From Mobula birostris (taxonomy: Eukaryota), in the NCBI RefSeq assembly GCF_030028105.1, contig NC_092384.1, forward strand, positions 17,367,629 to 17,431,628: a DNA stretch of 64,000 nt, in the 5' to 3' direction. Positions 1 through 59,900 of the stretch are shown here, piece by piece. A program made the position numbers and the translations under genes. Under the pieces are notes generated by a model, which saw only the letters and a program-made list of their open reading frames with translations, did not search any database and was not told the DNA's origin. Position 1 is the first letter of the stretch, and every line of letters starts with the position of its first letter.

Positions 1-1600
1 CATCAACCTGGGGAAAATGATTAATGAAACACAAGAAGAGAAATGTTATCAGGTAGGGAAAATTTAATAAGTTTGAAGTGCTGGAAACCTGAAATAAAAC
101 AAAGAAATGGAAGACACAAAACTTTAGTTGATCAGGAACCACCAGTTAAAGAGAAGCAGTTAACGTTGCATTCTGGGGAATGGTCTTCAATCTGGAATGT
201 CAACTGGCTCTCTTTCCAAATATGTCGTCAGTAGCTACCGATTATTTTCTGTTTGGATTCCAAATGGGAGAAGGCAATACTTTTATCCGTTTTAGGTGTT
301 TCTTCCCAAAATGAGGATAATGATCATTCAGCATAGCATCGTGGACCAGAAGATGCCATGTGGAGTTTCGTTTAACATGTGGTTATCATTGTTCACCACA
401 TACTACAGCGTTTAGCTGCAAGTATATTCGATTCCATTGCAGGTTATGCACTGCTGTATGGATTTTCGTTGGGGATCAGGGTTAAAACTGCATATAATAT
501 TGCAAAGACCAGTTCAACAAAACATTACGTCGTTGCATTTTTTTATCTTGTTTACTATCCGTTGAGATCAAATGTAGCAGACATTACGAATTGATTTGAT
601 CACACACTGTACTTTCCCATTGTGCAGTAAACTGTGATTCCGTAAACTAGCATCTACTAGTTTCTCGCAATCTCAGATGTTTGTTTAATTATTCGCCAAA
701 CTATGTTACCTTCCACTGGGAAACATTACCGCTCACTTTCCAATGCAACCGCTTACGAACTGGTGTGGAATCTTGAAAGAACACAGGAAGCAGATGCAAC
801 GGGTACATTCAAATAAATCATGGATATATATTGAAAATAGTTTTAAATTTTTCTGCTACACTCCAAAGTTTTATGGAATAAAATAGATTCATAATATCTA
901 TGCTATGCGTGTACCCTGCTCTGAAACAAGACCAGTCACTGCATCTACCGGGTCTCCATTCTGACATCCAGCCAAATAATGAGTGTTACGCCCTTCAGAA
1001 AAGAAAACAAAAGGAAATAATTTGCATTGTAAACACTGAACATTATCCGTTTGATACCCATCGATTTAATCATCTAAGTGGAACTGCTGAAGTTATAGAT
1101 CTTTCAGAAATTATTTGCTGGTAACAGTCGTGGTAATATACTCTGTTCTGCATTCATCTGCTGCTATGCTCAAAGGGTTTTGTCTTTCAACGAGGCTGTA
1201 AAGTGATAATAGCATTACAGCGGCCGTACTGTATTTAAATATTGTCACCAATATGGAAATTAAGACCAATGAGCCGTACATAAGTTGGCTAATGTTCTTT
1301 ACACAATCAGAGGGACTTTAGATCAACGCCAAGTCTTTTAAGTCTCAAATTACGGATCTGCCATTTTACTGAAAAGGACATTTGAAGAACTCCAAAGGGA
1401 TATAGCAAAAATCGTGAATGAGATATGAAATACTTCCAGTGGACTGGTGAAATAGTTGAATTTTAAAATCCAGCTTGTATTGTGCCAGAATATTGTCACT
1501 GAAATCCGGCTTCGAAAATCGCGATTCATGTCCAATCATGCTGTAAACGTCATTTGCTGTTTTAAAGTTAAATATCATAATAGGAATCCTTAGTTTCATG
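1..1600 (+). repeat. Segmental duplication block A, copy 1 (others at ~26505-27345 and ~57700-59290)
   Basis: Collinear diverged identity, e.g. gattccattgcaggttat at ~430, ~26520 and ~58110; ggaagcagat at ~786, ~26850 and ~58475. Confidence 0.9.
949..992 (-). pseudogene. Paralog of the 44-nt cytoplasmic exon (copy 1), with no adjacent TM exon
   Basis: ttttcttttctgaag|GG CGT...GAC CCG|gtagat encodes (G)RNTHYLAGCQNGDP. Flanks 1-1600 are homologous to 57700-59290. Confidence 0.65.
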
Positions 1601-2269
1601 AGACCATGGATTTGCCATTCGCTTGGATAACATCCGTGGTGTGTTGGAAAGTTTCCTTCGGAAGATTCCAGGGCGCAGGGCTAAGCAAGTTTGTATGGAA
1701 GACCAGCAGTTTCCCATGCTGCCAGTCTCCCCTCTCCACGCCACAGATGTTGTCCAAGGGAATGGCATTAGGACCCATACAGCTTACAGCCATGAACGGA
1801 AAAGCGAAGCTGATATTATGCGCATTTATTCTACATTTCTATTCTTTCATAAACCTGTCGGCCTGCAGCAAAATGGTCGAAAATGACCTGACACTGCTAT
1901 ACGAACGATGATGCCCTGCAGATAGGCAACCCAGGGGCTGAACGAACTCCGCTTCTCCCTACAGAGATTTCACTGAAAGGTAAGCCCAAAGTTCACGATT
2001 TTGTAAACGTGGACTGCTTCCGCTACAACTACAGTTCGTATTTAACTTAGGAAAATCTATTTTCAGATTGCTTTCACAACATTTAGCAGTTCCCTCTGCT
2101 GCAATGGCGATCCTGAGATCACGGTTGCCGTACACCACTGCCATGGACCATATACGGATTACAGATGTTTATGTGCTTGTTGCCGTGAGGCAAATTAGTT
2201 TGTATAAGTTCTCAGGGCCCGAGATGGAGTGCTATCCGACCTTTTGGGAGGCTCGTGCATAGCTTGAAG

Positions 2270-2910
2270 GTGTCTTGATAGAGGTATTCAAAATATCCTG
2301 ACCCACGGGTGAGGGGCCGGAATGGATATGACAATTTTTTGCAGTTGTTCAAGAAACGCTCTAAGAATACGCCGCAATCTTTTAGGCTGGTGAGCCTGAC
2401 GCTTGTAAAGGGTAATTTGTTGGAAATATTCCAAAATATTCCAAATGACAGGATACATAACTATTTAGATAGGAGTAGGAATAGCCATCAAGATCATGTG
2501 CATGGTAAGCAGTGTCTGGCTTACCTTAAAGAGCTTTTCGAGGAGTTTACCATCTTGAAGGAAATACAGTAGATGTTGTCCACATGGCACACCCTTGGGC
2601 AAAGTCCGGAATGAGAGGCTGATGAAGATGGTTTGGTTGGCATTCAGGATGAATTAGTAAAATGTATTTAACATTGGCTTGGCGGGAAAGCCAGAGAGTG
2701 GTAGTGGACGTCTTCTCTCTGACTGGAGGCCTGCAACTGGAGGTGTGCCACGGGGATCGGTGCTGGTTACGTTGTCAGTTGTCCATCGATATTAATGATT
2801 TTTATGATAATGGATTAAGCTGGTTCAGGAAGTTTGTAGATCTGGACAGTGGGGAATATATGCAATGTGACATGGGACGGCTGTTAAAATGGGCTGTAAA
2901 ATGACAGCTG
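2270..2910 (+). mobile_element. Old CR1 LINE ORF2 fragment
   Basis: Degenerate RT-region sequence, e.g. WLTGRRQRVVVDG-like aacattggcttggcgggaaagccagagagtggtagtgga. Confidence 0.65.
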
Positions 2911-3378
2911 GAAATTATTCGCTTCCGAATTCCATTTGAGCGCAACTCTCTACTCTTTACATTCTAACCCTATCAAAATTCATCTCGATATTACGATTTC
3001 TATTTCTCTCCCTATTTTGAATGGGGAAGAGGGTATAGATTTTGAAAAAAAAATTGCAAATCACATTTGGATTGATAATTTGCAGCTCGTGCGACAAATA
3101 GATAAATTATATTGCTATTAATTCTTTTGCATCTGGGTGAGTTTGTAACCTTGGCATATCCTGTAAGAGAGTTGATAAAATTGTTCATGCTTTGCATCCT
3201 GTGTGATGGGAAATCGAGCTTTCCAGCGACAGCCACTCACATCAGTAACAAATTTATTTCAACATTTTGCTTGCCTGCATTTGACTCGTATCTCTCTCCA
3301 TCTCGGTTGCCCGAAGAAGATAATGGAGTCTTGGATCATGGGGAAGACTTGTGGATTGTAGTCTTTTTCAGAGGTCTG

Positions 3379-6017
3379 TTAGTTCATGTTATGTGTATTT
3401 TTGGTTACACTGTTTATATTGCTATTTAGCACGATTTTGACGTAGCACTTCGACGCGAATTGGTTCTGCGGCCTGCAGCGAAATTTTACACCGAACTCAA
3501 AGACACTGAACATTCCGAGAGTGTTTCAAGGACTCTGCTTTGATGTTTACTAGTCTGTGTGTTATTCGTTCCTTTTTGCCGTCTGCACTATCTGCTGTTT
3601 TATTCTCGTTGGTTGTCTGATTTTTTTTTAAAGTTTCCATGATGTTTCTTTTTTGCCTGGCTGCCTGCGGGAAAACAAATCTCAGGGTTGTATATTGCTT
3701 ACATAATTCATAGCAAATGTACGTTGATCTTGAATCGAACAAAAATAGTAACAACCTTCCTTCTTTGTTTTTCTTCGTTGTGTTGTTCCGTTCCAATCAT
3801 ATACCATCGGTCAATTATCACCCCCCTGGTTGCAACCGCAAACGCAAACCCCGACTTCTCGTCCTCTTGATTATATTTTAGCTCGTCTCCCTCTCTTGTT
3901 CGAACTCTAGCCGCTCCTGCAAAGACATTCTTGACTTCCAAACTGAAATTTGGTAGCTATGAATTCTATTCGCCTTACAATCAACATTGCAGTAAGATTT
4001 GCAGAAAACGGGGAGAGCAGGTGCGATTTTACGGCAAGAAAGGCTTTAACGCTTTTTTTTCTCCTAATAATTTCCTTCAGGGTTTGTTTATAAAAGTCCG
4101 ACTGATGAACTATTGTTTAATAGCTGGAAAACAACCGAAAAGAAACTGATGAACGAGACTGGTTTGAACAGTAAGTCCATTCCGTCGGACACCGTCATTC
4201 ACACGTCTCCGGTAAATGTGTGATTTTGGATTCTGAGCATTCATGAAACTGCACAAGGGAAGCGATATATGGTCGAGGAGTAGGCCTGTTACTTCAGCAA
4301 TTCTCATCTAATTCAAATGCTTGTTCATTTCGAGGCTGCATACCTTTTATGAAATAAAAACATAATACTAAATGTTACTTCATAAATTTATTCCAGCGAT
4401 GGATTTGTCGTTTTTTTTTTTGTACAATGTCGCCCCCATAGTACTCAGGTTCCTCGCTTGCTGCTCTGGCTAGTTCGCACGAAGAACTCGGCGAGAAGTA
4501 ACAACAAGTGTTGTCTCTGACAGAAAACGATTTCGGATGTAGGATAATAATCACAGAGAAGAGAGTGCTTAGAGTTGAAACTATACATTATTCAGTTTAA
4601 TGATTATGGTAACACAGATATTTAGGAGGTATTGCAAGAAAATCTATAAAGCGAGCATGGGGGACACCTCAACTGATAGAATGCAGTTCCGAGGCTCCAT
4701 TTTTAAGTCCAATCAGCACGAGCGGAACTGGGGGTAATGCTGCTATTTCAAATATCTCTTAAATTTGCACAAAGTAAAAGATGCAGAATCAATCTGAGCT
4801 AATGTTTAACCAGGTGCAGACAAAACAGGCATCGGAATGAATCATTTGTCTGACTCGGCAGCGCATACACGCTTACCCGTTTCTAATATGAGAATACAGA
4901 ATATTCTTCAAATCATCGTGGTCGGCGGTGAAACTCTACTGAATTTCTCGCGAAAGCACTAAAGACTCTGATTACCATGCGGATCACGCCCCTCTTGTGA
5001 GTTGTTATGCACCTGGAATTGCCACGATTTGGCGGGGACGTTGCGCTGTTTTCATTGACACGTTATCGCCATCATTGAATTGCATCTCCTGCCCTCTCCG
5101 AAATGAAATCTTGTATGCGTATCGAGCGTGAGGTTGTTCACAGTAACACACATTTAGTCCAGTGGATCCCACTGGATGTAATTAAGTTCGGGCTGTTGAG
5201 CAGATTGTCGAGGAGAGGATGAATCAATGGTCAGCTTCCATATGCTTCCTACGTTCATAGTCAATATTCTGATTTCCATGCCAATTACCACACCATTTTG
5301 TCCAGTTATGCATTGGGAATTTCCACGAATCGTTTGGGATGTTATGCTACTTTCATGGACACATTGTCGCCATCACTGAATTCCATCGTATGTCCTGTCA
5401 GAATTGAAATAGATTGCAGAAACACGTATTTTGTCCATTGGTGCAGCTGGATGTAATTGAGGTGGGGAAGTTGAGGAGGTTGGCCGGATGAGGACACCGA
5501 CGTAGTTAATTTTATCCTGCTGTTGATGTGGATGAAGTGTAAGGGGGAAAACAACAATTAATAAGAGACAGTTACCTTTCAAGTGATTTGAACTGCCTAA
5601 CACAGAAATGCGACTGCGGTTTTAAACACCGCTTCCAGTAGGTAAGTTTTCTGCCGAGACGGGTGGGGGGTGGGGAGAGATGGGGGACTGGTCTTCATCT
5701 TCAGATATTCCGTTTTTCGACACATAAATACCAAAGGTGACAGGACTGTGATTAATTTCCCATGAACCACCGTCTGTTCTCTATTAGTCGATTCCTCATG
5801 GCGTGTAGGAATTGAAAAGTAACTTGGACAGATCACTAACCATTTAAAAATAAGCTGGCTGAAAAATAATTACCTGGTTTAAACACTTGTGAGATTGTTG
5901 TGGTTGCTGTTAGGTGACAATTAAATAAGGTGGCGCATGCATCATTAATTGTAAATGCTTTGGAAATAGTCCCTGTATCTCTTTAGTTTGGCTTGCATAT
6001 ATATTGTTCATTGTTAA
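3379..6017 (-). pseudogene. Orphan cassette of small cytoplasmic-tail-like exons, copy 1
   Basis: Candidate exons: 5835-5759 (ICPSYFSIPTRHEESTNREQTVVHG), ~5519-5427 (..PHLNYIQL), an exon ending 4877 (..KNILYSHIRN), 4516-4445 (DNTCCYFSPSSSCELARAASEEP), 4248-4203 and 3465-3379 (NQFASKCYVKI...stop). Synonymous differences vs copy 2; some stops and frameshifts. Confidence 0.55.
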
Positions 6018-6480
6018 CTGGCCAGGAAAAACACAAAACAGTATAAGAAAAAAAATGTGCTTTTTAAGTACTTAATTTATCATTTTATTAATTCAAATGC
6101 TTGAATATTTCTGAAAATGTCAGAAAAATCGAGAGGTTTTCAACTGTTAAACACAGCTCTGGTTATGTCTATGGGCTGACTGTTTTCTAGATTTGTAATT
6201 TATGAGAACTTGTATGAGAAAAGTGTACTTTTGTGCACTTCACAACAAAATCCATTGTAACGTCGCGCTTTAAATGTCTTTACCTTCATTGGAAACATAT
6301 TCCCAAATGTTCTCAACAATGTCTTTCTATAAGCGAACAGAACAGGAACAGGCCACCGACCCACAATGCTGCGCCAAACCAGCTAAAAGGGAATCAAAAC
6401 ACACAACCACTAATCACAACCACCTGACCCATGTTAATCCTTACATCCATATGCCTATCCAAATGTCTGTTGAAATCTCC
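3380..6480 (+). repeat. Segmental duplication block B, copy 1 (copy 2 at ~27410-29430 plus ~31905-32230)
   Basis: Collinear identity, e.g. gaacgagactggtttgaacagtaag at 4151 and ~27524. Segment ~3480-4140 is present only in copy 1. Copy 2 is split by a CR1. Confidence 0.9.
4965..5520. repeat. Old two-unit tandem duplication (~275-300 bp unit); also at ~28340-28890
   Basis: ctgattaccatg/ctgatttccatg and tcgccatcattgaatt/tcgccatcactgaatt recur 301 bp apart; ggatgtaatt recurs 275 bp apart. Confidence 0.8.
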
Positions 6481-6720
6481 TATTGTACTTGCCGGTACGA
6501 GCATACCAGGCATCCACAACTCTCTAAGTAAAAGACTTGCCCACCTTGAACCTGCCCCCTGTCACGGTCAATGTGTGTCCTCTAGTATTAGACATGTCAA
6601 CTCTGGGTAACAGAAGCTCTCTGTAAACTTTATCTATGCCTCTCAATCTTGTAAATCTCTATTAGATCTCCCTTCAGCCTGCGACGCGCCAAAGAAAACA
6701 ACCCATGTTTAACAGCATGA
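6310..6720 (-). mobile_element. Old CR1 3' end, shared with ~32080-32470 (predates the duplication)
   Basis: CR1 3' UTR-type text (acaggcc..cccacaatgctgcgccaaaccagctaaaa) at the same junction in both block B copies. Confidence 0.65.
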
Positions 6721-6721
6721 T

Positions 6722-9700
6722 ACAGTTGTGCCGAACATGTCCTTAATTAAAAATGACTAGGCTTACCAAGAGCCCTCGATTTTAAAAAGCTCCATGAACC
6801 TATCTAAAATTCTCTTAAAAGACCCTACCGTATCCGACTCCACCACCTTTGCCGGCAGCCTGTTCCACGCACTCACCACTCTCCGAGAGAAATATTTACC
6901 CCTGACATCTCCTCTGTACGTACTCCACAGCACCCTAAACCTCTGTCCTCTTATGGAAACTATTTCAGCCCTGGTAGAAAGCCTCTGACTATCCACACAC
7001 TCAATGTCTCTCACCAACTTATACACCTCTATCAGGTCACCTCTTATCCTCCGTCGCTCCAAGGAGAAAAAAATTTGAGTTCAGTCAACCTATTCTCCTT
7101 AGGCATGCTTCCTAATCCAGGCAACATCCTAGTAAATATCCTCTGCACCCTTTCTATGGCTTCCACATCCTTCCTGTAGTGAGGCGACCAGAGCTGAGCA
7201 TTGTACTCCAAGTGTGGTCTGACCAGGGTCCTATATAGCTGCAACATTACCTCTTGGCTCCTAAATTCAATTCAGCGATTGATGAAGGCGAATGCACGGT
7301 ACGCCTTCTTAACCACAGAATCAACCTGCGCAGCTGATTTGAGTGTCCTATGGATTCGGACCCCAAGATCTCTCTGATCCTCCACACTGTCAAGAGCCTT
7401 ACCATTAATACTATATTCTGCCTCATATTTGACCTACCGAAATGAACTATTTCATGGTTATTTGGGGTGAACTGCATCTGCCTCTTCTCAGCCCAGTTTT
7501 GCATCCTCTCAATGTCCTGTTGTAACATCTGACAGCCCACCACACTATTCACAACACCTCCAACCTTTGTGTCAGCAGCAAACTTACTAACCGATCCCTC
7601 CACTTCTTCGTCCAGGTCATTTATAAAAATCACGACTTGTATGGGTCCCAGAACAGATCCCTGAGGCACTGCACTGGTGACCGAACTCCATGCAGAATAT
7701 AACCCGTCTACAACCACTCTTTGCCTTCTGTGGGCAAGCCAGTTCTGGATCCACAAGCAATGTTCCCTTGGATCCCATGCCTCCTTACTTTCTCAATAAG
7801 CTTTACATTGGGTACGTTATCAAAGGCCTTGATGAAATCCATATACACTACATCTGCTGAGTTTCCTTCATCAATGTGTTTTGTCACATTCTCAGAAAAT
7901 TCAATCAGGCTCGTAAGGCATGACGTGCCCTTGACAAAGCCATGCTGACTACTCTTAATCTAACTATACCTCTCCAAATTTTGAGATATCCTGCCTCTCA
8001 GGATCTCCTCCATCAACTTCCCAACCACTGAGGTAAGACTCATAGGTCTATAGTTTTCTGAGCTATCTCTACTCCATTTCTTGAATAAAAGAACAACATC
8101 CGCAATTCTCCACTTGCCGGTAACCTCTTCCGTCCCCCTTGATGATGCAAAGATCATCGTCAGAGGCTCGACAATCTCTCCCTCGCCTCCCACAGTTGCC
8201 TGGTGTACATTTCATCCGGTGCCAGCGACTTATCCAACTTGATGCTTTCCAAAAGCTCCAGCACATCCTCTTCCTGAATATCTACATGCTCAAGTTTTTC
8301 AGTCTGCTGCAAGCCATCACTACAATCACCAAAATCGTTTTCCATAGCGAATACTGAAGTAAAATATTCATGAGGTACCACTGCTCTTTCCTCCGGTTCC
8401 ATACACACATTCCCACTATCACACTTGATAGATCTTATTCTTTCACGTCATATCCTCTTGCTCTTCACATACTTGTAGAATGCCTTGGGTTTTTCCTTAA
8501 TCCTACCCGCCAAGGCCTTCTCAAGCCCCTTCTGGCTCTCCTAATTTCCTACATAAGCTCCTTCCTCTAACTCTTATAATCTCCCCGATCTCTGACGTTA
8601 CAGATCTCTCAAACTTTTGTCAACTTTTCTTTTCATCCTGAGTAGATTTATTACAGCCTTTGTAAACCACAGTTTCTGTACTCTCAGATTTTTTTTCTGT
8701 CTCATTGGAATGTATCCGTGCAGAACTCCACACAAATATCGCCTGAATATTTGCCAAATTTCTTCCGTACTTTTCCCTATGAACATCTTGTTTTCCAATT
8801 TAAGCATCCAATTTTCTTCCTAATACCCTCACAATTCCCCTTACTACAATGAAACTCTTTTCTAACTTGTCTGTGCCAATCTTTCTCCAATGCTGTTGTA
8901 AAGGAGATAGAATTATAATAACTGTCTCCAAAATGCTCTCCCACTGAGAGATCTGACACCTGACCAGGTTCATTTCCCAAGACCAAATCAAGTACAGTCT
9001 CTCCTGTTTACCTACATATTGTGTCAAGAAACCTTCTTGAACACACCTAACAAACTTCACCCCATCTAAACCCCTTGCTCTAGGGAGATGCCAATCGATA
9101 TTTGGGAAATTAAATCTCTCATTACGACAATTATGTTGTTATTACACTTTTCCAGAGTCTGTTTTACTATCTGCTCCTTGATATTCCTGTTACTATTGGG
9201 CGGCCTATAAAAAACACCCCAGTAAAGTTATTGACCTTTTCTTTGTTTCTCCACCCACAGAGACACCGTATATGCAATCCTGCTATGGTGTCCACCTTTT
9301 CTGCAGCCGTGACACTATCTCTGATCAACAATGCCACGCCCCTACCTCTTTTGCCTCCCTCCCTGTCCTTTCTGAAACATCTATAACCCGGCACTTAAAG
9401 TAACCATTCCTGTCCCTCTGCCATCCACATCATATCTCCAAGTACTGATCCACGCTTTCTGCTCATCAGCTTTGTTCACAACACACCTTGCGTTAAAATT
9501 GGCACATCTCAGATCTCCGTTCTGAGCGAGTACCTTCTTCATGAGCTGCCTGTCCTCCCTCTTGCACTGTCCACGAGCTTTCTCTATTTGTGAGCCAACA
9601 TCTTCTTCCCCAGTGACTCCAGTTCGGTTCCCACTCCCCAACAATTCTAGTTTAAACTCTCTCCAGTAGCATTAGCAATCCTCCCCGCCAGGATATTGGT

Positions 9701-11935
9701 TCCCCTGGGATTCAAGAGCGACCGGTCCTTTTTGTACAGGTCACACCTTCCCCAAAAGAGGTCCAAATGATCAAGGAATCTGAATCCCTGCCCCCTGCTC
9801 CAATCCCTCAGCCACCCATTTATCTTCCACCTCATTCTACTCCGGTTCTTACTGTCGCGTGGCACAGGCAGTAATCCCGAGATTACTACCTTTGCGGTCC
9901 CGGTTCTCAACTTTCTTCCTAACTCTCTATAAACTTTCTTCAGGACCTCTTCCCTTTTCCTACCTATGTCAATGCTACCAATATGTACCACGACCACTGG
10001 CTGTTTTCCCTCCCACTGCAGGGTATCTTGGACATGATCTGAAACATCCTGGACCCTGGCACCAGGGAGGCAAACTATCATCCGCGTTTCTTTCCTGCGT
10101 GCACAGAACCACCTGTCTGACCCCCTGACTATAGAGTCCCCTATCACTGCTGCCATCATCTTTCTTTCCCTACATTTCTGAACCACAGGATCAGACTCCG
10201 TGCCAGAGGCACGGCCACTGTTGCTTCCCCTAGGCAGGCTGTTCCCCACCCACTCCGCCCCCCCCCCCCCCCGCCCGCCAACAGTACTCAAGCAGGAGTA
10301 TTTATTGTCAAGGGATACAGCCACAGGTGTACTCTCCACTACCCGACTCTTCCCCTTCTCTTTCTTGACTGTGACCCACTTGTCTGTCTCCCGTGGCCCC
10401 GGTGTGACCATCTGCCTATGTCACAATGGGGGACGTTGATGTTGGACCCAAAGGCAAGACACGGACACTGAGGTACTAGGAACAGGACTTGACTAGAATA
10501 GGGGCGTGACAGGATACAGACAAGGAGCAGGGACAATAACGCACTTTTGGCTAGGACATGGACAAGACAGGGAACCCGGACAAGGAACTATGCACTAGGA
10601 GCCTGGGCTTGGGCTCCGAGCCAGAGAATGGACAGGGACCCAGAACCTGGGTCATGCCTCGGGCTCGGGCCCCAGAACCAGGCAAGGTCATGACATGACT
10701 ACAGGACAGAACGTCGCTGGGGACTAGATGCTTGCGAGTGCAGGCTGGGGTCTTGAGTTTAGAAGCATGAGGCTGTGGTCTTGGTCTTGAGGCTTGAGGC
10801 TTGAGGCTTGAGGTTACGGTCTTGAGGCTTGGAGGCAGTCTGGGATCTTGAGGCTTGAGATTGGAGGCAGGCTGGGGTCTTGAGGCTTGAGATTGGAGAC
10901 AGGATGGGGTCTTGAGGCTTGAGATTGGAGACAGGATGGGGTCTTGAGGCTTGAGATTGGAGACAGAATGGGGTCTTGAGGCTTGAGTTTGGAGACGGGC
11001 TGGGGTCTAGAGGCTTGATCTTGGAGATAGGCTGGGGTCTTGAGGCTGGAGGCTGCAGGCTGGGGTCTTGAGTCTAGGAATGCGGAATTTGATACCTCGG
11101 AGGCTGGAGCTCGGAGACAGACTGGGAACTGTAAATCAACATAGAGCCGGGACTTATCCTTCTAAAAGCCAGGACTCATTTTTAACACGACACTAACATT
11201 AGACTGGACATTACATAGACATAGAGCTGGGACTTATCCTTAGACAAGCCGGGACTTAACTTTATCTCCACACCAAGGTGGGACAGGCCCATCCGTCAGG
11301 TAACGGCAGAACGGCGCGACTTACACAACAGAGGCCAAGACAAGACAAGACAGGACCCCTGGCAGGGCAACGGGAAAACGGCATGACTGACCCCATGGAG
11401 GCGAGGACAAGACAATACAGATCCCCCGCAGGGCAACCGCAGAACGGTCTGATTTACCCCACGGAGGCGAGGACGAGAAGAGACAAACACCGAAGAACGA
11501 CAGACAGTTCCATACCTGCATCGGGGTCGATCCGAGTTGCAGTTCGGCCAGCAACTTCAGCTGGCTACGGAAACAGCCGGATCGCTACCTAGCTCGGAGT
11601 GGCTGCCAGCCACTCAGCTGGCCCGGGAAACAGACGAATCCATACGGCCTAAAGATGTCAAGTGGCCGCACTAGCCTTCCACTGTCAGGTTGCTCCCAAG
11701 AATTCTTGACAAGACAAACCAGCAGCCCACAGTTGTCCCCATGGCTACTTATATTCCAAGCCCCAAGATGGAAAACAGGTGCCTATGATTAGCTCAAACA
11801 AATCAAGGGAAAGCTGGAAGACCCGGAGTCCTAACTCCACAGACCGGAGCGTGAACCGGAATGCGGACTTCACGAACCGGACCATGATAGCCTATAGCTC
11901 CTTTCTGTCACCTCCCCGCTCTCCCTGACCAGGCA
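6722..11935 (-). mobile_element. Long CR1 LINE (ORF1 esterase plus decayed ORF2 EN/RT), interrupted by a solo LTR
   Basis: ORF2 fragments RRIRGDLIEVYK, YRTLVRPHLEY, VPQGSVLGP..KFAADTK, YRPMSLTSVVGKLME, LRCANFNAR. ORF1 9647-10411 with GDSIVRG..CLPGARV..VHIGSID. Confidence 0.92.
10419..11889 (-). mobile_element. Solo LTR (Gypsy-type) with internal ~32-bp tandem repeats
   Basis: Termini TGTCAC...CATGATA. Perfect 5-bp TSD GCCTA (10414-10418 / 11890-11894). CR1 ORF1 sequence resumes on the other side. Confidence 0.88.
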
Positions 11936-11949
11936 AGATATTCGAGCTG

Positions 11950-13690: not shown

Positions 13691-13712
13691 TTATAAACGA
13701 ACAACAACTTTC

Positions 13713-18776: not shown

Positions 18777-18825
18777 CTCAGTTTGTATACTGTATACATT
18801 CTCTGAGATTAAAAAGAACCATTGA

Positions 18826-24550: not shown

Positions 24551-24554
24551 ATTA

Positions 24555-40447: not shown

Positions 40448-40469
40448 TACCACGGAATTAATAAGGCTG

Positions 40470-47800: not shown

Positions 47801-48460
47801 GTCAATATCACAAATGACCTGACTTGGTCCAACCAAGCAGAGTCCTCTGCCAATTAGGCCCAACAGCGCCTTTACTTTCTGAGAAAACCAAAGAAATTTG
47901 ACCTGTCCCCTAAAACCCTCACTAATTTTTATAGGTGCAGCGTAGAAAGCATTCTTCTGGGGTGCATCACAACCTGGTATGGAAGTTGTCCTGTCCAAGA
48001 CTAGAAGAAGCTGCAGAAGATCGTGAACACATCGCACAAACCAATCTCCCGTCCTTGCACTCACTTTAAACCGCACGCTGCCAGAGCAGTGCTGCCAGGA
48101 TAATCAAGGACACGACCAACCCAGCCAACACACATTTCCTCCCTCTTCCCTCCGGGAGAAGGCTCAGGAGCTTGAAGACTCGTACGGCCAGATTTGGGAA
48201 CAGCATCTTTCCAACTGTGATAAGACTGCTGAACGGATCCTAGACCGGATCCGGGTCGTACCCTCCAAATATCCGGACCTGCCTCTCGGTTTTGTTGCAC
48301 TACCTTACTTTCCATTTTTCTATTTTCTATTTATGATTTATAATTTAAATTTTTAATATTTGCTATCGATTTGTAATGCAGGGAGAAGGAAGCGCAGAAT
48401 GAAATATCGCTGTGATGATTGTACATTCTAGTATCAATTGTTTGGCCACAATAAAGTATC
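44830..48460 (+). mobile_element. Near full-length Rex1/Babar LINE, decayed
   Basis: RKRGKRAG leader; EN motifs CVFCFTET and GKTRGGGV; RT motifs [37 protein letters not shown] and YKFADDTTIVG; 3' AATAAA tail at ~48450. 5' boundary uncertain. Confidence 0.88.
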
Positions 48461-48791
48461 AATAAGAAAGATAAGAGTACATGAACAAGATATTATTACT
48501 TGAAAGTAATTATCAAAGCAATATTTAAAAGTGGAGAAATCGACGAGATTTGAGATGTGAAGTGACCGAGGAGAAGAAAATGAATGGATGATTCTCAAAG
48601 GTACCTCTGTCCCAGCCAGTATATCCGGCAGAACAGGTCTGAGCGGCCCACTCTTGTTTCAAAGCGTGTACGTTTCTATTATTTTGCGTATTTCTCTGGA
48701 TTGCCGAAACTCTTTCAGGAATAGATTGTCGTTTGATTTATCAGACAGAGGATTTATTTCACTGCCGATGTTTTCGGTACCTATTCCCTAC

Positions 48792-48830
48792 CTTCTTTAG
48801 TCCCGCACCTTATCCACCAACTACGCTGAC
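48792..48830 (-). pseudogene. Candidate 39-nt phase 1-1 exon (G)QRSWWIRCGTKE
   Basis: gttgttcatcag|...GAA G|gtaggg. Same-length paralog at 23674-23712. Confidence 0.45.
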
Positions 48831-49252
48831 CTGATGAACAACGATAATATATTATTATAACAGGATGATCAGCCTGTTGTGTCACACATACATCTACCTG
48901 AACCGGAATTAATGTGTCCATTTAAGGACTACGGGCCAAATAAATGCTGGGCATATTTCAGATTTATTTTACTATATTGGGATATTGGCCAGTTATTAAT
49001 CGCTGAGGAATCTGTCCAAAGCACCATATTCTTCGAGAGTACACTTCTAGACAAGTGATTCCTATATAAATCTACTTATCACCGTCTACGTTTTTAGTCA
49101 AATGTTATGATTAGGCTAAACCTGATTTCCTTTAATGTGACCATGTGCGTATGTCCACTGTTTCAATGTGGGCTGGGACAGGCACACAGGTTGCTATGTT
49201 TTTTGTCTTGCCTTTTTGTTGCCCTGGCTGTTGCGATAGTGCAGCTGTATTT

Positions 49253-52200
49253 AACCATATAACATATAACCATATAACAATTACAGCACGGAAACAGGCC
49301 ATCTCGGCCCTTCTAGTCCGTGCCCGACGCTTACTCTCACCAAGTCCCATCTACCTGCACTCAGCCCATAACCTTCCATTCCCGTCCATATACCTATCCA
49401 TTTTTCTTTTAATTGATTAAATCGAACCTGCCTCTGCCACTTCTGCTGGCAGCTGGTTCCACACAGCTGCCACTCTCTGAGTAAAGAAATTCCCCCTCGT
49501 GTTACCCCTAAACTTTTGCCCCATAACTCTCATCTCATGTCCTCTTGTTTGAATCTCCCCTACTCTCAATGGAAAGAGGCTAACCACGTCAACTCTATCT
49601 ATCCCCTTATAATTTTAAATACCTCTATCAAGTCCCGCCTCAATCTTCTATGCTCCAAAGAATAAATACCTAACTTGTTCAACCTTTCTCTGTAACTTAG
49701 GTGCTGAAACCCAGGGAACAATCTAGTAACTCGCCTGTGTACTCTCTCTATGTTGTTGACATCTTTCCTATAATTCGGTGACCAGAACTGCACACAATTC
49801 TCCAAATTTGTCCTCAGCAATGCCTTGTACTATTTCAACATTACATCCCAACTTCTATACTCAATGCTCTGATTTATAAAGGCCAGCATACCAAAAGCTT
49901 TCTTCATCACCCTATCCACATGAGATTGCACCTTCAGGGAAATATGCACCATTATTCCTAGATCACTCTGATCTACTGCATTCCGCAATGCCCTACAATT
50001 TACCATGTATGTCCTATGGTGATTAGTCCTACCAAAATGTAGCACCTCAGACTTATGAGCATTAATTCTGATTTGAAGGAGAATGGACGTGAAAGCATAG
50101 AAGAACATCTGGAGAAATTTCTGAAACGGTCGTTCACTGCTGCCGTTACTGTGTGGTCGGGAATCTTTCGGAGGGTAGGTTTCAAAATCGCCGGCCTTGC
50201 CTGCTTTTGGCGACCGAGAAGGAGGTCGAATCGTTCCGCAGAGATGCCGCTCAGTACTCGGTGTTCGGAGAGTTGATCAGAGCTTGAAGTTTTCGGATGA
50301 TCAGAGTTCGATTATGGTCAGCATGGCAGGGAGAGTTTTTCTTCCTTCCTTCTCCCGCCTGCGCGAGATGTGGGACATTTGAGACTCTTTGAACTTTACT
50401 GTGCACGTGGACTTTCTTCATCAAGTTATAGTATTGTTACACTGTTTGTCATTATATGTATAATTATGTAGTTTTGTTAGTTTTTTCATTCTTGCTTTGT
50501 CCTGTGTTTTGTGATAGCCCACTGGAGGAAATAATGTAATATTTCTTAATGCATGCATTACTAAATGACAATAAAAAGGGGACTACGTGTCTTCATAATC
50601 TAAACTCCATATGCCATCTTTCAGCCCACTATTCTTACTGGCCTAAATCACTCTGCAAGCTTTGAAAACCGACTTCATTATCCACAACGCCACCTATCTT
50701 AGTACCATCCGCATACGTACTAATGCAATTTACCACCCCGTCATCCAGATTATTAATGTATATAACAAACAACATTGGGCCCAGTACAGCTCCTTGAGAC
50801 ACACCACTAGTCACCGGCCTCCAAACTGACAAACAGTTATCCACCACCACTCTCTGGCATCTCACATCCAGCCACTGTTGAATCCATTTTACTACTTCAA
50901 TATTAATACCTAACGATTGAACCGTCCTAACTACCTTCCATGTGGGACCTTGTCAAAGGCCTTACTGAAGTCCATATAGACAAATTCCCCCGATTTACCC
51001 TCGTCAGTTTTCCAAGCCACCTCTTCAAAATTTCAATAATGTTTGTCAACATGACCGTCCACGCATAAATCCATGTTGACTGTTTCTATTCAGACCCAGT
51101 CTGTCCAGATAATTATATATACCATCTATAAGAATACTTTCCATTAATTTTCCCACCACTGACGTCAAACCTACAGGCAGATAATTGCTAGGTTTACTCT
51201 TAGAACCCCTTTTAAACGATGGAAACACATGAGCATTATACCAGTCGTTCGGCACCATCCCTGTTTCTAATGTCATTTGAAATACATCTGTCAGAGCCCC
51301 TGATATTTCTACACTAACTTCCCTCAAGGTCCTGAGGAATATCTTGTCAGGACCCGGAGACTTATCCACTTTTATATTCCTTAAAAGCGCCAGTACTTCC
51401 TCTTCTTTAATCATCATAGTTTCCATAACTACCTACTTGTTTCCCTTACGTTACACAAGTCAATGACCTTCTCCTTAATGAATACCGAAGAAAAGAAATT
51501 GTCCAAGATCTCCCACATCTCTTTTGGCTCTGCACATAGCTGTCCACTCTGATCCTCTAAGAGACGAATTTTATCCCTCACTATCCTTTTCCTATTAATA
51601 TAACTGCAGAAACTCTTTGGATTTATTTTCATCTTACATGCCAAAGCAACCTTATACCTTCTTTCTTCTTTTCTAATTTCTTTCTTAAGATTCTTTTTAC
51701 ATTCTTTATATTCCTCGAGCACCTCACTTAGTCCAAACTGACTATATTTATCGTAGCTCTCTCTCTTTTCGAACCAAGTTTCTAATATCCCTTGAAAGCC
51801 ATAGCTCTCTCAAACTTTTACTCTTTCCTTTCAACCTAACAGGAACCTAAAAACTCTGTAGCCTCAAAGCTTCACCTTTAAATGATCTCTATTTCTCAAT
51901 TGCATCCTTCCATTAAAACAAATTGTCCCATCCACTCCTTCTGAGTCCTTTCGCATCTACTCAAAGTTATCCTTTCTCTAATCAAAAATCTCAACCCTGG
52001 GTCCAGTCCTATCCTTCTCCATAATTATATTGAAACTAATGAAATTGTGATCAGTGGACCCAAAGTGCTCCCCAACACATACCTCCGTCACCTGTCGTAT
52101 CTCATTCCCTAACAGGAGATTCAACACTGCCCCTTCTCTAGTTGGTACCTCTGTGTATTGCTGCAAAAAACTGTCTAGCACACATTTTCCAAACTCCAAA

Positions 52201-53180
52201 CCATCCAGCCCTTTTTCAGCAACACACATCAAAGTTGCTGGTGAACGCAGCAGGGCAGGCAGCATTTCTAGGAAGAGGTGCAGTCGACGTTTCAGGCCGA
52301 GACCCTTCGTCCTGGCCTGCTGCGTTCACCAGCAACTTTGATATGTGTTGCTTGAATTTCCAGCATCTGCAGAATTTCTGTTGTCAGCCCTTTTACAGAA
52401 TGGGTTTCCCAGTCTAGGTGGGGAAAATTAAAATCTTCCACAATCACAACCTTGTGCATACTACAAATATCTGCTGCCTCCTTAACAATTTGCTCCTCCA
52501 ATTCTCGCTCCCCATTATCTGGTCTATCATGCACCCTGTAAGCTTTACTATACCTTTCCCATTCCTCAATTCCATCCAAATAACCTCCCTAGACGAGCCC
52601 TCTAATCTATCCTGCTAAAGCACCGCTGTAATATTTTCTCTGACAAGCAATGCAACACCTCCCCGTCTTACTCCTCCGATGCTATCACACCTGAAGCAAC
52701 GAATTCCAGGAATATTTAGTTGCCAATCACACCCCTCCTGCTACCATGTTTCACTAATAGCTACAACATCATATTTCCAGGTATCTATCCATGCTCTAAG
52801 CTCATCCACCTTTTTTACAATGCTCCTAACATTAAAATAGAGGCATAAAAGTAACTCTCCACATCTTACTTTCTGTTTATCCCTCATGGTGCAAACAACT
52901 TTATTATCTTTTTCTTCCTTCTACCCTATATCTTCGGTCAGTGCGCTCCCCTTCTCTGTCTCCTGCCTACCCCCCCCCCCCCACCAAACGCAATGCCTAC
53001 TAGCTTTCTCTATTTGTGAATTAACCTTCTCTCTCCTAGTCGCTTCAATTTGACTTCCACCCCCAAACATTCTCGTTTAAATTCTCCCCAGTAGCTTTCG
53101 CAAATCTCCCCGCCAGGATATTGGTCCCCCTCGGATTCAAGTGCAACCTGTCCTTTTTATACAGGTCACACCTGCCCCAA
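49253..53180 (-). mobile_element. CR1 LINE (ORF1 3' end, ORF2 fragments, tail) with nested insertions
   Basis: RRLRRDLIEVFK, GVSQGAVLGP..YADGTK, NYLPVGLTSVVGKLME, EDFNFPHLDW, WGRCDLYKKDRLHLNPRG. (AACCATAT)n tail. Confidence 0.88.
52217..52384. mobile_element. Palindromic Penelope-derived short insertion
   Basis: ~40-bp inverted arms (aacacacatcaaagttgctggtgaacgcagcagg / cctgctgcgttcaccagcaactttgatatgtgtt). Flanking direct repeat cagccctttt. Confidence 0.7.
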
Positions 53181-53316
53181 AAGCTAATTTTACAGCTAAT
53201 TTTCAGCAGCAAACCGTGAATGTATATGAAAGAGAAGAGCACTGATTTTTTTATCATCAGACATTTACTGATCAATATTCAAACACAGCGGTGTTATCGC
53301 GAGAACATGTTGCGAT

Positions 53317-53322
53317 TTTATT
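53317..53322 (-). promoter_or_regulatory. Candidate polyadenylation signal (AATAAA) of the receptor gene
   Basis: tttatt on the plus strand, about 480 nt downstream of the stop codon. Positional argument only. Confidence 0.3.
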
Positions 53323-53804
53323 CACATCTTCAAATCTATATTTCACTCGGTGGAACGTTGACATAAGTGAGCAAGAATAACTGCTCTGCTGGCGTTTTTT
53401 ACCCTGCAAATGAAGTTTCTCTCGCTGGTGGATGACGAATTTCTGATTTTTTTTTCATACTCTGAGGACTGCGGATGGAATATCTTGTTGGTGGGTCGGT
53501 ACTTTAGGCAAAGTAGGTTTGTATCATAGAATGATCGGGGACTGTTCAATGGTGATTCTCACGGGGTAGAAAAGATAGAGGCTTATTCCCCATCTCATTC
53601 TGTAGTTTCAGACTTTTATATTTTTTTTCCTGTGATAATCGCTTCCAACAAATCAAAGATGAAATTGATCTCTAATCTTCCTAACTTATACATGTGATAT
53701 CGATTAACAATCTTTGTCTGGATGCAAGAAATGAAAAGAAGCAATGCCTGGGGTCTGCACTGATTGATAGTCTATAGCTCTGCACTGCAGTTAGATTCTC
53801 AGCT

Positions 53805-53936
53805 TCACAGTTTCTTTGATGTATTCACATCAGAGTACAATGTATGTTGGTTTTGATGTGTGGATCCTGAGGTGTTCTTGGAATCGGGAAGCTGCAGAGC
53901 AGCGTAGGTCAATTTGTCAGCTCCATTTCTTTTAGT
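53805..53936 (-). CDS. Terminal cytoplasmic exon with ITIM (LTYAAL) and ITSM (TLYSDV)
   Basis: Acceptor gaaatattttcacag, phase 0, 43 codons plus TGA. LTYAAL at 53912-53895; TLYSDV at 53843-53826. Confidence 0.85.
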   Translation of the reverse strand, partial: TKRNGADKLTYAALQLPDSKNTSGSTHQNQHTLYSDVNTSKKL

Positions 53937-56900
53937 CTGTGAAAATATTTCAAAATCAGTGGTTAATCGAGAATCCCTTGAGTTGAGCAAATTGAATCAA
54001 AAATTGTAGGGTAACTTAGTGATGCACTCATAATTTATCAATTTTAGATTTCTGCCGTTTTGCACAGACTTTATGTCAACATTGTTTCAAACTTTGCCTT
54101 TTTATTCATACGGTATTTCAACTCCAAGAACCTGTGTTATCTCACTGAACAATCAGCTCTCTTCCCTTTCTTAACATGAACTTCAACAAAATCTAAATGG
54201 GAGAGTAGGTAACTCCTTGAAGCAGGAGGTATGGTTCAAAATATTTCGCTAACTCAAAATACAAGCACATCATTGTGTTATATGTATCCGATTGCTGCAA
54301 GCTGTTTAGTCTATAGACCTCACGGTGTTTCCTCAGTCACACCTGCCAACAGAACTCGAAATGCACACAGACACTGTCATCAGTGGATACCCAACAACTG
54401 ATAGAATGAACGTTGGCACTTTGTTCATTCCTGCGCTATGGTTACTGTTTTGTCACAGTTCGGTATTTCCAAGAAAAACACCAATGTTCGGTTGGATCAG
54501 TGTTCCTCTGTTATCAGTTATTTGTGTTCATTATGGAGCTGATAATGGGCGTTGGAAAGGATGTCTATTCCCAGATTCATGCTTTTTAGTCTTTCCTCGT
54601 TTGCAAATTACATATGAAATTAAATTCATGAAAGCAAGGGAAGAAAGATAATCTCGAGGGATTCTGCAGGAATGCAAAGAAAGATGCTGATGTAATTCAT
54701 TAGGTAAGGCAGCATGTACGAAGGTAAATAACCAGTCAATGTTTCTGGCCGAAACTCTTTATCAGGACGGCAAAAGAAGGAGTCAAAAGCTAGAATAAGA
54801 AGCTGGGGAAGGAATATAAGATAACAGCTGATAGGAGAAACCATGTGAGTAAAAAGGTGTGTGGATGATGTGGGGTGGACTGACGTAAAGCTGGGAGGTG
54901 ATGAGTGGAAAAGCAAAAGGGTGCAAGAAGAAATCTGATAGGAGGAGACCGTGGACCCTGGAAGAAATGGAAGACGGAGGGCGACCAGTGGAGGTGATGG
55001 GGAGCCACAATTCGGAATAGAGAACAAAGAGTAGGGGAATGATGAAATAAGTATCAAAAGTTAGAGAGATCAATGTTCATGACTTCTGGTGGGAGTTCAC
55101 AGGTTGGAGAAAAAATGTGATGATATTTCGAGGGTGTTCGTTCGTAAATGGTACAGTGACAAAGGTCTGCTCAGGTCTGTAAATTTAACCTCCTTTTGGA
55201 TAATGTATATATATATATACTGGAATCGGTTGTTAGGAATGAGATTAGGGAGTACCTCGAGGCATAACACAAGATAGGCCAAAGCCAGCATGGTTTCCCG
55301 AAAGGAAAATCCTGCTTGTTTGACCTACTGAAAATTTTTGAGGAAATTACAAGCCGGAAAGACAAAGGAGATGCGGTATATATGGTGTACCGGGATTTTC
55401 AGAAGGGCTTTGGCAAGATGCCCTGTATGAAGCTGCTTAGTATGATAAGAGCCCATGAAATCACAGCGAAGTTACAGGCATCGGTGAGGCACTGGCTGAT
55501 CGGCAGAAGACAGAGAGTGGAACAAAGTGCTCCTATTCTGGCTGGCTGCCGGTTACCAGCGGAATTCCATAGGGGCTGGTGCTGCGACCGCAGATTTTAT
55601 TATGTATTTTTATGAGTTGGACTACGGTATTAATAGATTTGTGGCTAAATTTGTTGATAATACAAACGTAGGTGGAGGAGCGGGAAGTGTTGAGGAAACA
55701 GAGAGCCTGCAGACAGACTCAGGCAGTTTGGGGGAATGGACAAAGAAGTAGCAAACATAATACAATGTTAGAATGTGTATGGTGATGCACTTTAGTGAAG
55801 AAATAAACGTGTAGCCTATTATTTAGATGGGGAGAGAATGCGAAATGCAGAAATCGAAAGGGACCTGGGCGTCCCTGTACAGGATACCCGAGAGGTTACC
55901 CTCCAGGTTGAGTCGGTGGTGAAGAACGCGAACGGAATGTCAGCATTCATTTCGAGAAATATAGAATATAAGAGCAAGGATGCGATGTTGCGACTCTATA
56001 AGGCACTCGTGAGACCGGACTTACAGTATTGTTTGCAATTTTGGGCTCCTTATTTTGGAAACGATATACTGACGTTGGAGAGAGTTCAGAGAAGATTCAG
56101 GAGAATGGTTCCAGGAATAAAAGTGCTGGCGTAACACCATTACGCAATTACGCAGCAGTAATCTAGGTTGAATTACCGTACCCGACTAAATGGTGTGTTT
56201 CTTCGTTTTCCCATGACCGTATGATTTTCTTTGGGAGCTCGGGTTTTCTCCCACATTGCAAAGACGTACGGATATGTTGGCTAATTGGTCACATGCGTAT
56301 AATTGGGCGGCACCAACCAGTTGGGTTGGACGGTTCTGTTACAGTATAACAATTACAGCACGGAAACAGGCCATCTCGGCCCTTCTTGCCGAACTCTTAC
56401 TCTCACCTAGTCCCACCGACCTGCACTCAGCCCATAACCCTCCATTCCTTTCCTGTCCCTAATATAACCATATAACCATAGATAAGCGTTATATCTCTGA
56501 GGCAAATTCATATGTTATTGATTGCAATCTCTCTGCTCTACCTGAGAATAGATAATGCGCTCTTCTTTTTGAAGACCTTTGCGAAATACTTTGCTCTGCC
56601 TCATATTTAGTGGAGCATATTCAGTCGTGTGCTCAACCGCAGCTTGTTCAGCCTGTGAGAAAAAAAAAACATATTTAATGCTGATAACTGATACAAAGGT
56701 CAGTGATCATGAACTAAGTTTGATTCGGAATACCGAATAATAGAAAAGGATTAAAAAATGGTTGGAATAACATTTTGTCCGCGTATAGTGATATTTTCCG
56801 TATGTTATAGCGGAAGTGGGATACCAAAACCATAATATGAGGAATTCTGCAGATGCTTGGAAATTCAAGTCATGACGAAGGGTCTCGGCCCGAAACGTCG

Positions 56901-59900
56901 ACTGTACCTCTTCCTAGAGATGCTGCCTGGCCTGCTGCGTTCACCAGCAACTTTGTTGCGTGTTACCAAAACCATTTCACGCTGGAAGTCGCTACGTTTA
57001 CTTTAGATTTCCAAACAACCACTTATAACCATCCTATCAATCGGATGGGTTTCTCAGGCCCGGCCATCTTTTTTTTTTTTACATCTCTTCTGTCATATCC
57101 CTTACGTCCCTCTAAGTTTTGTACATGGGCTTTATCTAATATGTTTCACTTACGCGCCCCGCCAAACTATTATAATTATTGGCATAACCAGATTTCGTAC
57201 CCAAGGTGCAATTAGAATCTGTGACCCTTCAAACTTGCATTATCTCGGTTGACAACATTGGAACAAATGGCAAAACCTGATGTACTGTTCCTGCCTGGCT
57301 TAACCGAGGTAGCAAATACGGGAGGGGCATCTTGCCAACTGTTGAGCTTATTAGTTTTGCTGGTGAATCAATAAAATTCGAATTGAAATAAGTAGAACAG
57401 TTGGACGTGCCAGTTACAGTAAATCGGTATAACAGCATTTGTTTTAGCTGAAATAAAGGCATAGCATTCTTGAGCAATAAAGCATCAGTAAAAAAAAACT
57501 TGAACGTTTCAGCTTCAACTTAGATATTACTTTCAGAAGCGCTCCTTAATTCAGGAAGTTCTACGAACGCTGATAGACATATGACAATCTTTTTTTGCTG
57601 ATAAGAAAACCTGCTGCACCTGTTATCGTTATGTAAAGTAAAAACATGCGCTAAAATTGGAAAGGTGATTAATGGAACACAAAAAGACGTTTCGAGTTCT
57701 AGTTAAATGGGTATACAACCGATAAAGATTTAATATATGCTAACGGAAGAATCCAGCTGGGACAAATTTAATAACATTGAATTGCTGGAACTCTGAAGTA
57801 AAACAAACAAATAAATCACACAGTAGATCAGGAAACATGAGAGCAAAGAGAAAAAAATAACGTTTATGTTGTTTTCTGGGCAGGGGTGTTCAATCTGAAA
57901 GGACAGCGTTTTCTCTTTCCCAGGATGTCCTTAAAGATTTTTAATTTTGGATTAAACCCAAAATGAGAGATGACAATACGTTTATAAGTTTCAGGCATTG
58001 TTTTCAAAATTGAGGAAGATAATCATTCAGCATAGCCTCGTGGAGTCGGAGGTACCTTGTGGAGTTTCGTTAACATGTGGTATCACTGCACGGTTAATTG
58101 GAAGCATATTCGATTCCATTGCAGGTTAATCAGTGCTGTGTAGATCTTTGTTGAGAATCGGAGTTAAAAAGTTCATATGATTTTCCAAAACAATATTTCG
58201 TTGCGCTTCGTTGCATTTTTAATTTTGCCTACTGTGCGTTCAAATTAAATGTAACACATATTGCGAAATGATTCATGCGGGTACTGTATTTCCCCATTGA
58301 TTACTACACCGCGATTCTCGTAAACCGACATTTGATATATACAATATCTCAGTCTTAGATTTGTATTTAATTCTACATCACACGACGTACGATTAACAGC
58401 CTACATTAGTATATACTACCGTTCATCTTAGTGCAACCGGTTGTGAACTGGTGTGGAATCCTGAAAGAAAAAAGGAAGCAGATGCAACAGGAAAATTCAA
58501 ATACAGCTTGAATATATACTTCAGAGTAAAGAGTTCTCAGAGAGATTCATTCTTCCTTCCCACGTTTCAAATGTTAGAACAAAATAAATTTGTAACATCT
58601 CTGCTATACGTATACGTCACTCTGAAAGTAGACGAGCCACTTCACCTACCGGCTCTTCATTCTGACATCTGTCCAAAGAACTTGTGCTAATCCCTTAAGA
58701 AAAATAAAATAAATTATTTGCATTGTAAAGATTGGACATTATTCGTTTGCTGCCAATCGGATTCATCGCATTAGAGGAACTGCTAAAAGTACGGATCTTT
58801 CAGAAAGCATGTTGTGGTATTGTTGTCTTAATACTGTGCATCAACATTATGGCACTATGTTCAAGAGTCTACGATATTTAACGAAGCTGAGAAGTGATAA
58901 TAGCATATGAGTGGCTATATTACATTTAAATACTGTCGCTAAAGTGTAAATTAAAACAAATGAGACATTGACGAGTTCGTCAGTTTTCTTCCCACAGTCA
59001 CAGTAAGCAATAGACCTACGCCAAGTTGCTTACGCTTCAAAATATAGATTTGCCATTGCATTCAAAACTACATTTGCGGTATTCCAAAGGGATATGACGG
59101 CATTTATGAGCAAGGTACAGCATGTAAATACAGCGCGTGGACTGGTAAAATTATTGGATTTTAAGGTCCAGCTTGTGCTGTGCCTGATGATCATCAATGT
59201 AATCAGGTTTTATCATTACAATCTATGACTAATCATGTAATGACATATATTCTTTTTGAAGTTCAATTTATTTAGAACATCTATTATGCACGAATCGCGG
59301 TGATATTTCTCAGCGATGAGGGCTCTTACCGTGCAATCTCTTTAACTTGATTTTCACCAAAACTATTATCAGAGCTAAAATTGCCGATCCGCCCACTGCA
59401 CATGCCAGAATAAATTTAGTTTCAACGCCTTGTGGATCAACGGGGGAAAAGAAGAAACAGTGAAGTATTTATACATCTAAAAAAATGCACACATGAGAAT
59501 CAACAATGCAAAATATTTTATAGGCTTCTTTCAAATTTCATTGCACAATATCGGAAAATATATCATAATACAGGAAATGTAAATTCCCACAGTTGTTATA
59601 TCACGATGAGATATAAAGTTTAAGTTTTGCTTTGTCATATTTTGGGCAAATGTTCAGAAGTGTGCAACCTTACAAATACTGCACGAATTCAATTTCTTAA
59701 TTCGTCCTACACAATTTAAACTAACGGAATAACACATTAGTGTTTGAACAGGTTTCACGTTGAATATTCTCTATCAAATACGAAGCTTCATAATTAGTCA
59801 TTCTTTCGTGTTTGTGTTGCTGTTCAGCTATTGCATTTACAAGGTCACATTGACCCCAGCACCATGAATTGTAAGCGCTTCCATCTTACATTGAGCGCAA

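Follow-up and report, generated by a model that had tools for sequence, protein, structure and literature searches.

The stretch of DNA analysed here, referred to as the window, comprises 64,000 nucleotides of the manta ray Mobula birostris (C19:17,367,629-17,431,628; genome 4.0 Gb) and contains no runs of N. Its minus strand carries the 3′ part of an immunoglobulin (Ig)-type receptor gene, gene1, and two further units, psi2 and psi3, in which blocks of sequence resembling gene1 recur. These units are very probably relics of two whole paralogous genes, that is, ordinary birth-and-death pseudogenes, and not extra signalling tails of gene1. For the analysis, 210 kb of flanking sequence was added and the blocks were searched one by one against the resulting 274-kb region; coordinates with the prefix w are the window numbering run on into the flanks, negative values and values above 64000 lying outside the window.

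The exons of gene1 have canonical AG/GT borders, run in the order leader, V, C1, transmembrane (TM) and three cytoplasmic exons (cyt1, cyt2 and cyt3), end at 53805 and reproduce XP_072135230.1 of Mobula birostris residue for residue (Table 1). A homologous protein of 346 residues and 96% identity was found in a search of 1.8 billion representative proteins, in a cluster which includes that accession. The 346-residue gene1 product consists of one V-set and one C1-set domain (Pfam) and an uncharged TM segment, the V domain has the J-like motif FGNGSGTKITV, and the last coding exon encodes both an immunoreceptor tyrosine-based inhibitory motif (ITIM) and an immunoreceptor tyrosine-based switch motif (ITSM). 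Assembled RNA contigs from three runs, X1 and X4 of organism A and X2 of organism B, define exactly three joints in the cytoplasmic part of the gene, 59329/30 to 58692/3, 58649/50 to 56651/2 and 56542 to 53936, all of them GT..AG on the minus strand. Across four runs, no joint or listed loose end leads from the TM donor to any site but 58693. The 3′ untranslated region (UTR) extends below 53805, and the RNA contigs run past 53750. A preliminary description of the window had placed the start of the TM exon at 59428, the stop at 53805 and two additional copies of cyt1 at 27077-27034 and 992-949, and all of these positions proved exact. Within the cyt1-cyt2 intron, two stretches, 56233-56614 and 56806-56996, show word depths of 10^4-10^5 in each of the four runs; the peaks of this region (56233-56996) are short, highly expressed or highly repeated elements resembling short interspersed nuclear elements, and all of the listed loose ends fall there. 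The V-C1 intron contains, at 60518-61587 and just upstream of the C1 exon, the decayed remains of a Tc1/mariner transposase (HTH_Tnp_Tc3_2, E=4e-13).

Table 1. Positions of the gene1 exons and of the relic segments in and next to the window.
Feature	Position	Strand	Basis and remarks
gene1 leader exon	72344-72290	minus	exon model; outside the window end
gene1 V exon	72085-71780	minus	exon model; outside the window end
gene1 C1-set Ig exon	60326-60033	minus	exon model; Pfam C1-set E=6.9e-13; sole C1 exon in window
gene1 TM exon	59428-59330	minus	exon model, tblastn; RNA joint to cyt1; sole TM exon in window
gene1 block A (TM-cyt1 intron, cyt1 exon, start of next intron)	57754-59329	minus	block seen again in psi2 and psi3
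gene1 cyt1 exon, 44 nt, phase 1 to 0, within block A	58693-58650	minus	exon model; RNA joints at both ends
gene1 cyt2 exon	56652-56542	minus	exon model; RNA joints 56651-58649 and 53936-56542
gene1 cyt3, last coding exon (ITIM LTYAAL, ITSM TLYSDV, stop)	53936-53805	minus	exon model, tblastn
gene1 3′ flank (D2 48496-49226, D 43294-44833), broken up by long interspersed nuclear element (LINE) sequence	43294-49226	minus	block search
psi2 5′ flank (E 27437-29428, E2 31902-32439, LINE insertion ~29430-31900 between them)	27437-32439	minus	homologous to upstream of leader/V
psi2 deletion junction, 85 bp	27352-27437	minus	gene0 equivalents ~134518 (5′ flank) and 128085 (block A)
psi2 block A relic with cyt1 copy 27034-27077	26498-27352	minus	66.4% to gene1
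psi2 3′ flank relics	19242-24543	minus	block and self searches
LINE with reverse transcriptase (RT) open reading frames (ORFs), between psi2 3′ side and psi3 5′ flank	6790-9195	minus	Pfam RVT_1 match; related copy 29542-31899
psi3 5′ flank	3272-6711	minus	gene0 134386-137839
psi3 V-C1 intron relic	1786-3274	minus	gene0 131206-132682; weakly colinear with gene1 V-C1 intron
psi3 block A relic with cyt1 copy 992-949, continuing past the window start	1-1785	minus	alignment of -1241..1785 to gene0 125570-128608

A six-frame scan gave one clear case of a C1-set exon, on the minus strand at ~60.0-60.4 kb. A search at the DNA level found 14 copies of this exon genome-wide, 13 of them within ~1 Mb on C19 and one on the unplaced contig C2919, and just one of the matches falls inside the window. 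The window is part of a cluster of ~1 Mb in which non-rearranging receptor genes of the type V(J)-C1-TM-ITIM/ITSM, a family of ~13 genes, stand in tandem. Nothing usable was found in the literature on PRARP or describing the batoid receptor family of this cluster. The members closest to the window, besides gene1, are the intact genes gene0 and gene2.

In a comparison of the window with itself (self-BLAST), 3404-6668 and 19242-27352 match 27437-32439 and 43294-58953 colinearly and on the same strand, at 65-82% identity and with E values down to 0, which bears out, for blocks A, D and E, the preliminary statement that the blocks recur in the same order and orientation. Block A, which represents the intron following the TM exon (57754-59327), is found again at 26506-27352 and 50-1540. 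In gene2 and an orphan copy, too, cyt3 is followed by homologues of D2 and D. The units differ in length because of LINE insertions (6790-9195 and 29542-31899). The coding exons were sought by sensitive tblastn, first with the V, C1, TM and tail peptides and then with the full-length sequences of seven proteins of the family. In the latter search (word size 2, E up to 20), no further copy of the V, C1, TM, cyt2 or cyt3 exon was found below 53000 in the window, and the significant matches in that part are the two copies of the 44-nt cyt1. The window accordingly has, as had been claimed, a single C1 and a single TM exon by both tblastn and the genome-wide C1 search. The units do not, however, correspond to the 3′ half of the receptor: block E is 5′ flank, just cyt1 recurs as a coding exon, and neither the exon with the ITIM and ITSM nor cyt2 does.

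The nature of block E is central to the interpretation. Besides its copies in psi2 and psi3 (27437-29428 and 4144-6134), the block is found upstream of leader and V in all three intact neighbours, at w73087-74892 in gene1, w135282-137796 in gene0 and w-64129..-60456 in gene2, and at 11 loci it has the orientation of a V exon 0.6-1.9 kb downstream of it. Because it precedes the leader and V exons of intact paralogues, block E is gene 5′ flank and not the end of a cytoplasmic tail. Apart from those on two small contigs, C2919 and C4229, all genome matches of E and A fall within C19 16.7-17.74 Mb, and this restriction to the cluster and the two contigs rules out that either block is a transposable element.

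The first of the two relics, psi3, consists of three segments that are colinear with gene0, the gene upstream. The stretch which corresponds to the gene0 5′ flank had been taken in the preliminary description as the end of the second unit. Compared with gene0, psi3 has two gaps, one over 132683-134385, which holds leader and V, and one over 128609-131205, which holds C1 and TM; these two segments have no match in window 1-8000 by blastn. The corresponding junctions at 3274 (leader and V lost) and 1785/1786 (C1 and TM lost) are clean, the sequence switching from one gene0 segment to the next within a few bases, and the tail segment starts 196 bp below the equivalent of the gene0 TM exon. The cyt2 exon of psi3, outside the window, has two stops. 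Since a 5′ flank and ~1.5 kb of V-C1 intron are still present, the ancestor of psi3 was a whole gene, and, judged from the sequence, psi3 appears to be a copy of a complete gene0-like gene and to have lost its four 5′ coding exons later, by two deletions. Identity to gene0 is uneven: it is 93.8% for the tail segment but 90.1% over the 5′ flank and 85.1% over the relic of the V-C1 intron, a pattern that gene conversion of the tail, or a mosaic ancestry, could explain.

Two observations on the surroundings of psi3 may be added. In its relative gene0 (w128804-133653), leader, V, C1 and TM are all intact and the TM segment has an arginine close to its start, cyt2 (w125826-125951) carries a stop, and a distant cyt3-like exon (w85909-86046) is without the ITIM tyrosine; gene0 may thus have undergone conversion from an inhibitory to a short-tailed, possibly activating-type, receptor. 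Two M. hypostoma homologues, P0003 and P0152, are annotated with short tails. On the other side, between psi3 and gene2, an inverted piece on the plus strand (w-17538..-9635) contains block E, a leader and an incomplete V exon (its first two-thirds) and is a further rearranged relic.

The other relic, psi2, extends from 32439 to about 19240. Its 5′ flank is 76% identical to the region upstream of gene0 (w135282-137796) and also matches that upstream of gene1 (w73087-74892). A single gap spans leader, V, the V-C1 intron, C1 and TM, and at the junction no homology to gene0 128086-134517 was found by blastn (windows 1-8000 and 26000-28000) apart from a 68-bp flank match. In the 3′ part, 24409-24543 matches the gene1 3′UTR region 53341-53474, 23280-24215 matches D2, and 21982-23214 together with 19242-19519 match D. 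LINE and other repeats occupy 24543-26498 in place of block B, cyt2 and cyt3, which are absent, and no copy of the ITIM exon was found in this unit. An orphan unit of TM, cyt1 and cyt3, with ITIM and ITSM intact and no V or C1 exon nearby, is located at w-107533..-114610, and a close relative of it at C19:17234257-17235875; both group with psi2 in the tree of A blocks.

The descent of the two relics was examined in a maximum-likelihood tree of 13 A-block copies from the cluster, which separates into two clades, each with support of 100/100. Clade I contains gene1, gene2 and four other genes, and clade II contains psi2 with two relics, psi3 with gene0 as its sister (100/100) and two further genes. 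The pairwise identities follow the same lines. Block A of psi3 is 95.1% identical to gene0 and 68.1% to gene1, and its block E is 90.3% identical to gene0, while the closest copy to block A of psi2 is the orphan TM-bearing relic at w-108797, 135 kb downstream (81.1%). Because psi2 and psi3 belong to clade II and gene1 to clade I, the downstream units are not copies of the gene1 tail, and on the evidence of the tree both come from a different subfamily.

The pattern in the window is thus most readily explained by the decay of two complete genes. As expected of internally deleted pseudogenes, the non-coding parts of both units are colinear with intact paralogues (three segments at 85-94% in psi3; E, A, D2 and D in psi2), and leader, V, C1 and TM are gone from both. 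In psi2, one deletion would have removed everything from leader through TM and a second loss cyt2 and cyt3, whereas psi3 would be a young copy of its upstream neighbour gene0, in which deletions of leader with V and of C1 with TM left part of the V-C1 intron between them. Once the ectodomain exons are lost, an apparent unit would run from the post-TM intron (A) to the 5′ flank of the next gene (E) and so mimic a repeated 3′ half. Homologies, junctions, phylogeny, the gene1 splice pattern and the missing exons are direct observations; we infer that the relics lack a function and that unequal crossing-over or duplication, with later deletion, gave rise to them. Degenerate C1 or TM exons upstream of 992 or 27077, which according to the preliminary description would make the copies ordinary pseudogenes, were searched for by tblastn and blastn and none was found; the 5′ flank and the intron relic nevertheless lead to the same conclusion.

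The recurrence of A, D and E in the same order and strand, together with the single C1 and TM exons, had originally suggested that two tandem duplications, leaving out the ectodomain, had copied a segment reaching from within the TM-cyt1 intron to the tail end and so given three serial 3′ halves. Such an origin is now most improbable and is contradicted by the structure of the units, which begin with the 5′ flank of a gene, as E is in the intact genes, include a relic of the V-C1 intron in psi3 and belong to the other subfamily, psi3 being 94-95% identical to gene0 and the A copies of both units falling outside the gene1 clade. Furthermore, the junctions differ between the two units, and cyt2 and cyt3 are not repeated in the window. 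An error of assembly, in which the exon-less junctions would be mis-joins or collapses and the real chromosome would have intact genes, also appears very unlikely. The setting would favour it, as many cluster paralogues are 80-95% identical and the unplaced contigs C2919 and C4229 carry near-duplicate gene pieces. However, the junctions are precise to the base and the flanking kilobases diverge by 6-34% from every other copy, so that no simple collapse can account for them, the window has no N runs, and three independent junctions would all need to be wrong.

A further alternative, and one which the preliminary description had left beside that of dead relics while leaning towards the latter, is that the downstream cyt1 copies serve as alternative 3′ exons of gene1 and provide a short tail without ITIM and ITSM. 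In both copies the phase-1 frame is still open and the splice borders are still AG (acceptor) and GT (donor). Against this, they appear to be no more conserved than the intron around them (31/44 and 32/44, or 70-73%, to gene1 cyt1, with 66-68% in the flanking intron, 44 nt being too short for a ratio of non-synonymous to synonymous substitution), and both psi2 and psi3 keep just cyt1 in the window and no full set of tail exons, psi2 having no further tail exons and the cyt2 of psi3 containing two stops. The RNA joins gene1 exons alone: the TM exon is spliced to cyt1 at 58693 alone in X1, X4 and X2, and this is the sole destination among the joints and listed loose ends of the four runs. In run X1, which covers even the introns of gene1, 46% of the words of the gene1 tail 53750-59450 were present, in comparison with ~1% of those of psi2 26400-29500, and psi2 words are close to absent from the RNA runs of the species. 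That gene1 occasionally uses the cyt1 relics, which lie 32 and 58 kb downstream, as alternative last exons is therefore scarcely to be expected, and the lean towards dead relics is upheld; if such use did occur, it would produce ITIM-less short-tailed isoforms of an inhibitory receptor, and dead paralogues would be a reservoir of decoy or activating tails.

Several points nonetheless weigh against the reading of the units as decayed whole genes. It is somewhat striking that each deletion in psi3 removes exactly one exon pair. The open cyt1 copies with their AG and GT borders would on sequence alone permit occasional use, and the RNA evidence consists of assembled contigs, which lose rare isoforms, with psi2 the one relic in which words were counted. 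The junctions are also read from the assembly of a repetitive cluster, in which an assembly error is a slight possibility.

Other repeats in the window include several LINE copies that encode RT and a GDSL-esterase ORF1, at 6790-10420, 29542-31899, 34490-36290, 45250-48100 and 49261-52600. At 13710-18776, an element of ~1.85 kb forms a tandem triplicate (14222-16922 matches 16051-18770 at 77-82%) and has internal repeats of 58-70 bp; a stretch at 40442-41983 is related to it, and similar sequence is found in the gene1 V-C1 intron (w64-66 kb).

Truncated pseudogenes are a regular component of receptor clusters that evolve by birth and death, such as KIR2DP1 and KIR3DP1 among the human KIR genes, LILRP1/2 and the relics of the SIRP cluster. 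The manta cluster resembles the KIR, LILR and SIRP clusters in being a tandem Ig-superfamily family with unequal crossing-over, exon-losing relics between live genes and inhibitory-tail and short-tail members side by side. It differs from them in its batoid host and in an ectodomain made of V(J) and C1 in place of C2/I-set domains, and its relics differ in that all ectodomain and TM exons have been deleted, leaving flanks, introns and one 44-nt exon. Turnover of tails is documented in KIR and Ly49 (PMC2213150). In contrast, clustered protocadherins, UGT1A and the membrane and secreted tails of the Ig heavy chain, where serial cassettes share one set of partner exons as the preliminary description had envisaged, are poor parallels, since the units here are split by promoter-proximal flanks of dead genes, have incomplete tail sets and show no splicing to common exons.

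At the protein level, gene1 resembles SIRP-alpha (PTPNS1) in that a V domain at the N terminus precedes a C1-set domain, in its one TM segment and in the tyrosine-based inhibitory motifs of the tail. It nevertheless has one C1 domain and not two, so that the V + C1 + C1 arrangement of a SIRP is lacking, and a V domain with a J-like motif; the SIRP-alpha-like name is an automatic NCBI annotation. The non-rearranging VJ-C1 genes of elasmobranchs, UrIg and UrIg2 (PMC12227049, PMC10751288), likewise have a germline-joined VJ-type V exon followed by C1, and UrIg2 (PDB 9dmx) is among the PDB matches of the gene1 C1 exon (E=3.5e-16). The solved UrIg2 fragment, however, is V-C1-C2-C3, dimerises and resembles the IgG Fc in its C2-C3 part, whereas gene1 is V-C1-TM with an ITIM/ITSM tail, and its architecture is neither that of UrIg nor that of UrIg2. 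NKp30 (NCR3), with one VJ-type V domain, lacks a C domain as well as an ITIM and carries a charge in its TM segment. It is unlike gene1 with its C1 exon, uncharged TM segment, ITIM and ITSM, and is not among the best 60 PDB matches of the gene1 V exon. Elsewhere on C19, at 3.1-4.1 Mb and 12.6-13.07 Mb, V and C1 exons form two more large arrays, with dozens of matches that are 30-45% identical to the gene1 receptor; these may be Ig light-chain or other antigen-receptor-type clusters.

The main value of the finding is a correction: what appeared to be one ectodomain with three signalling tails is, on the reading as decayed whole genes, probably the ordinary wreckage of gene birth and death in a fast-evolving cluster of immune receptors. 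As a by-product, a validated exon model and splice pattern are now available for a V(J)-C1 inhibitory receptor of the manta ray, and block E, as a mark of gene starts across the cluster, aids the annotation of the other ~13 members and relics. The receptor family itself, a multigene family that combines a germline-joined VJ, C1, TM and ITIM/ITSM and has some members without the inhibitory tail, bears on the evolution of antigen receptors.

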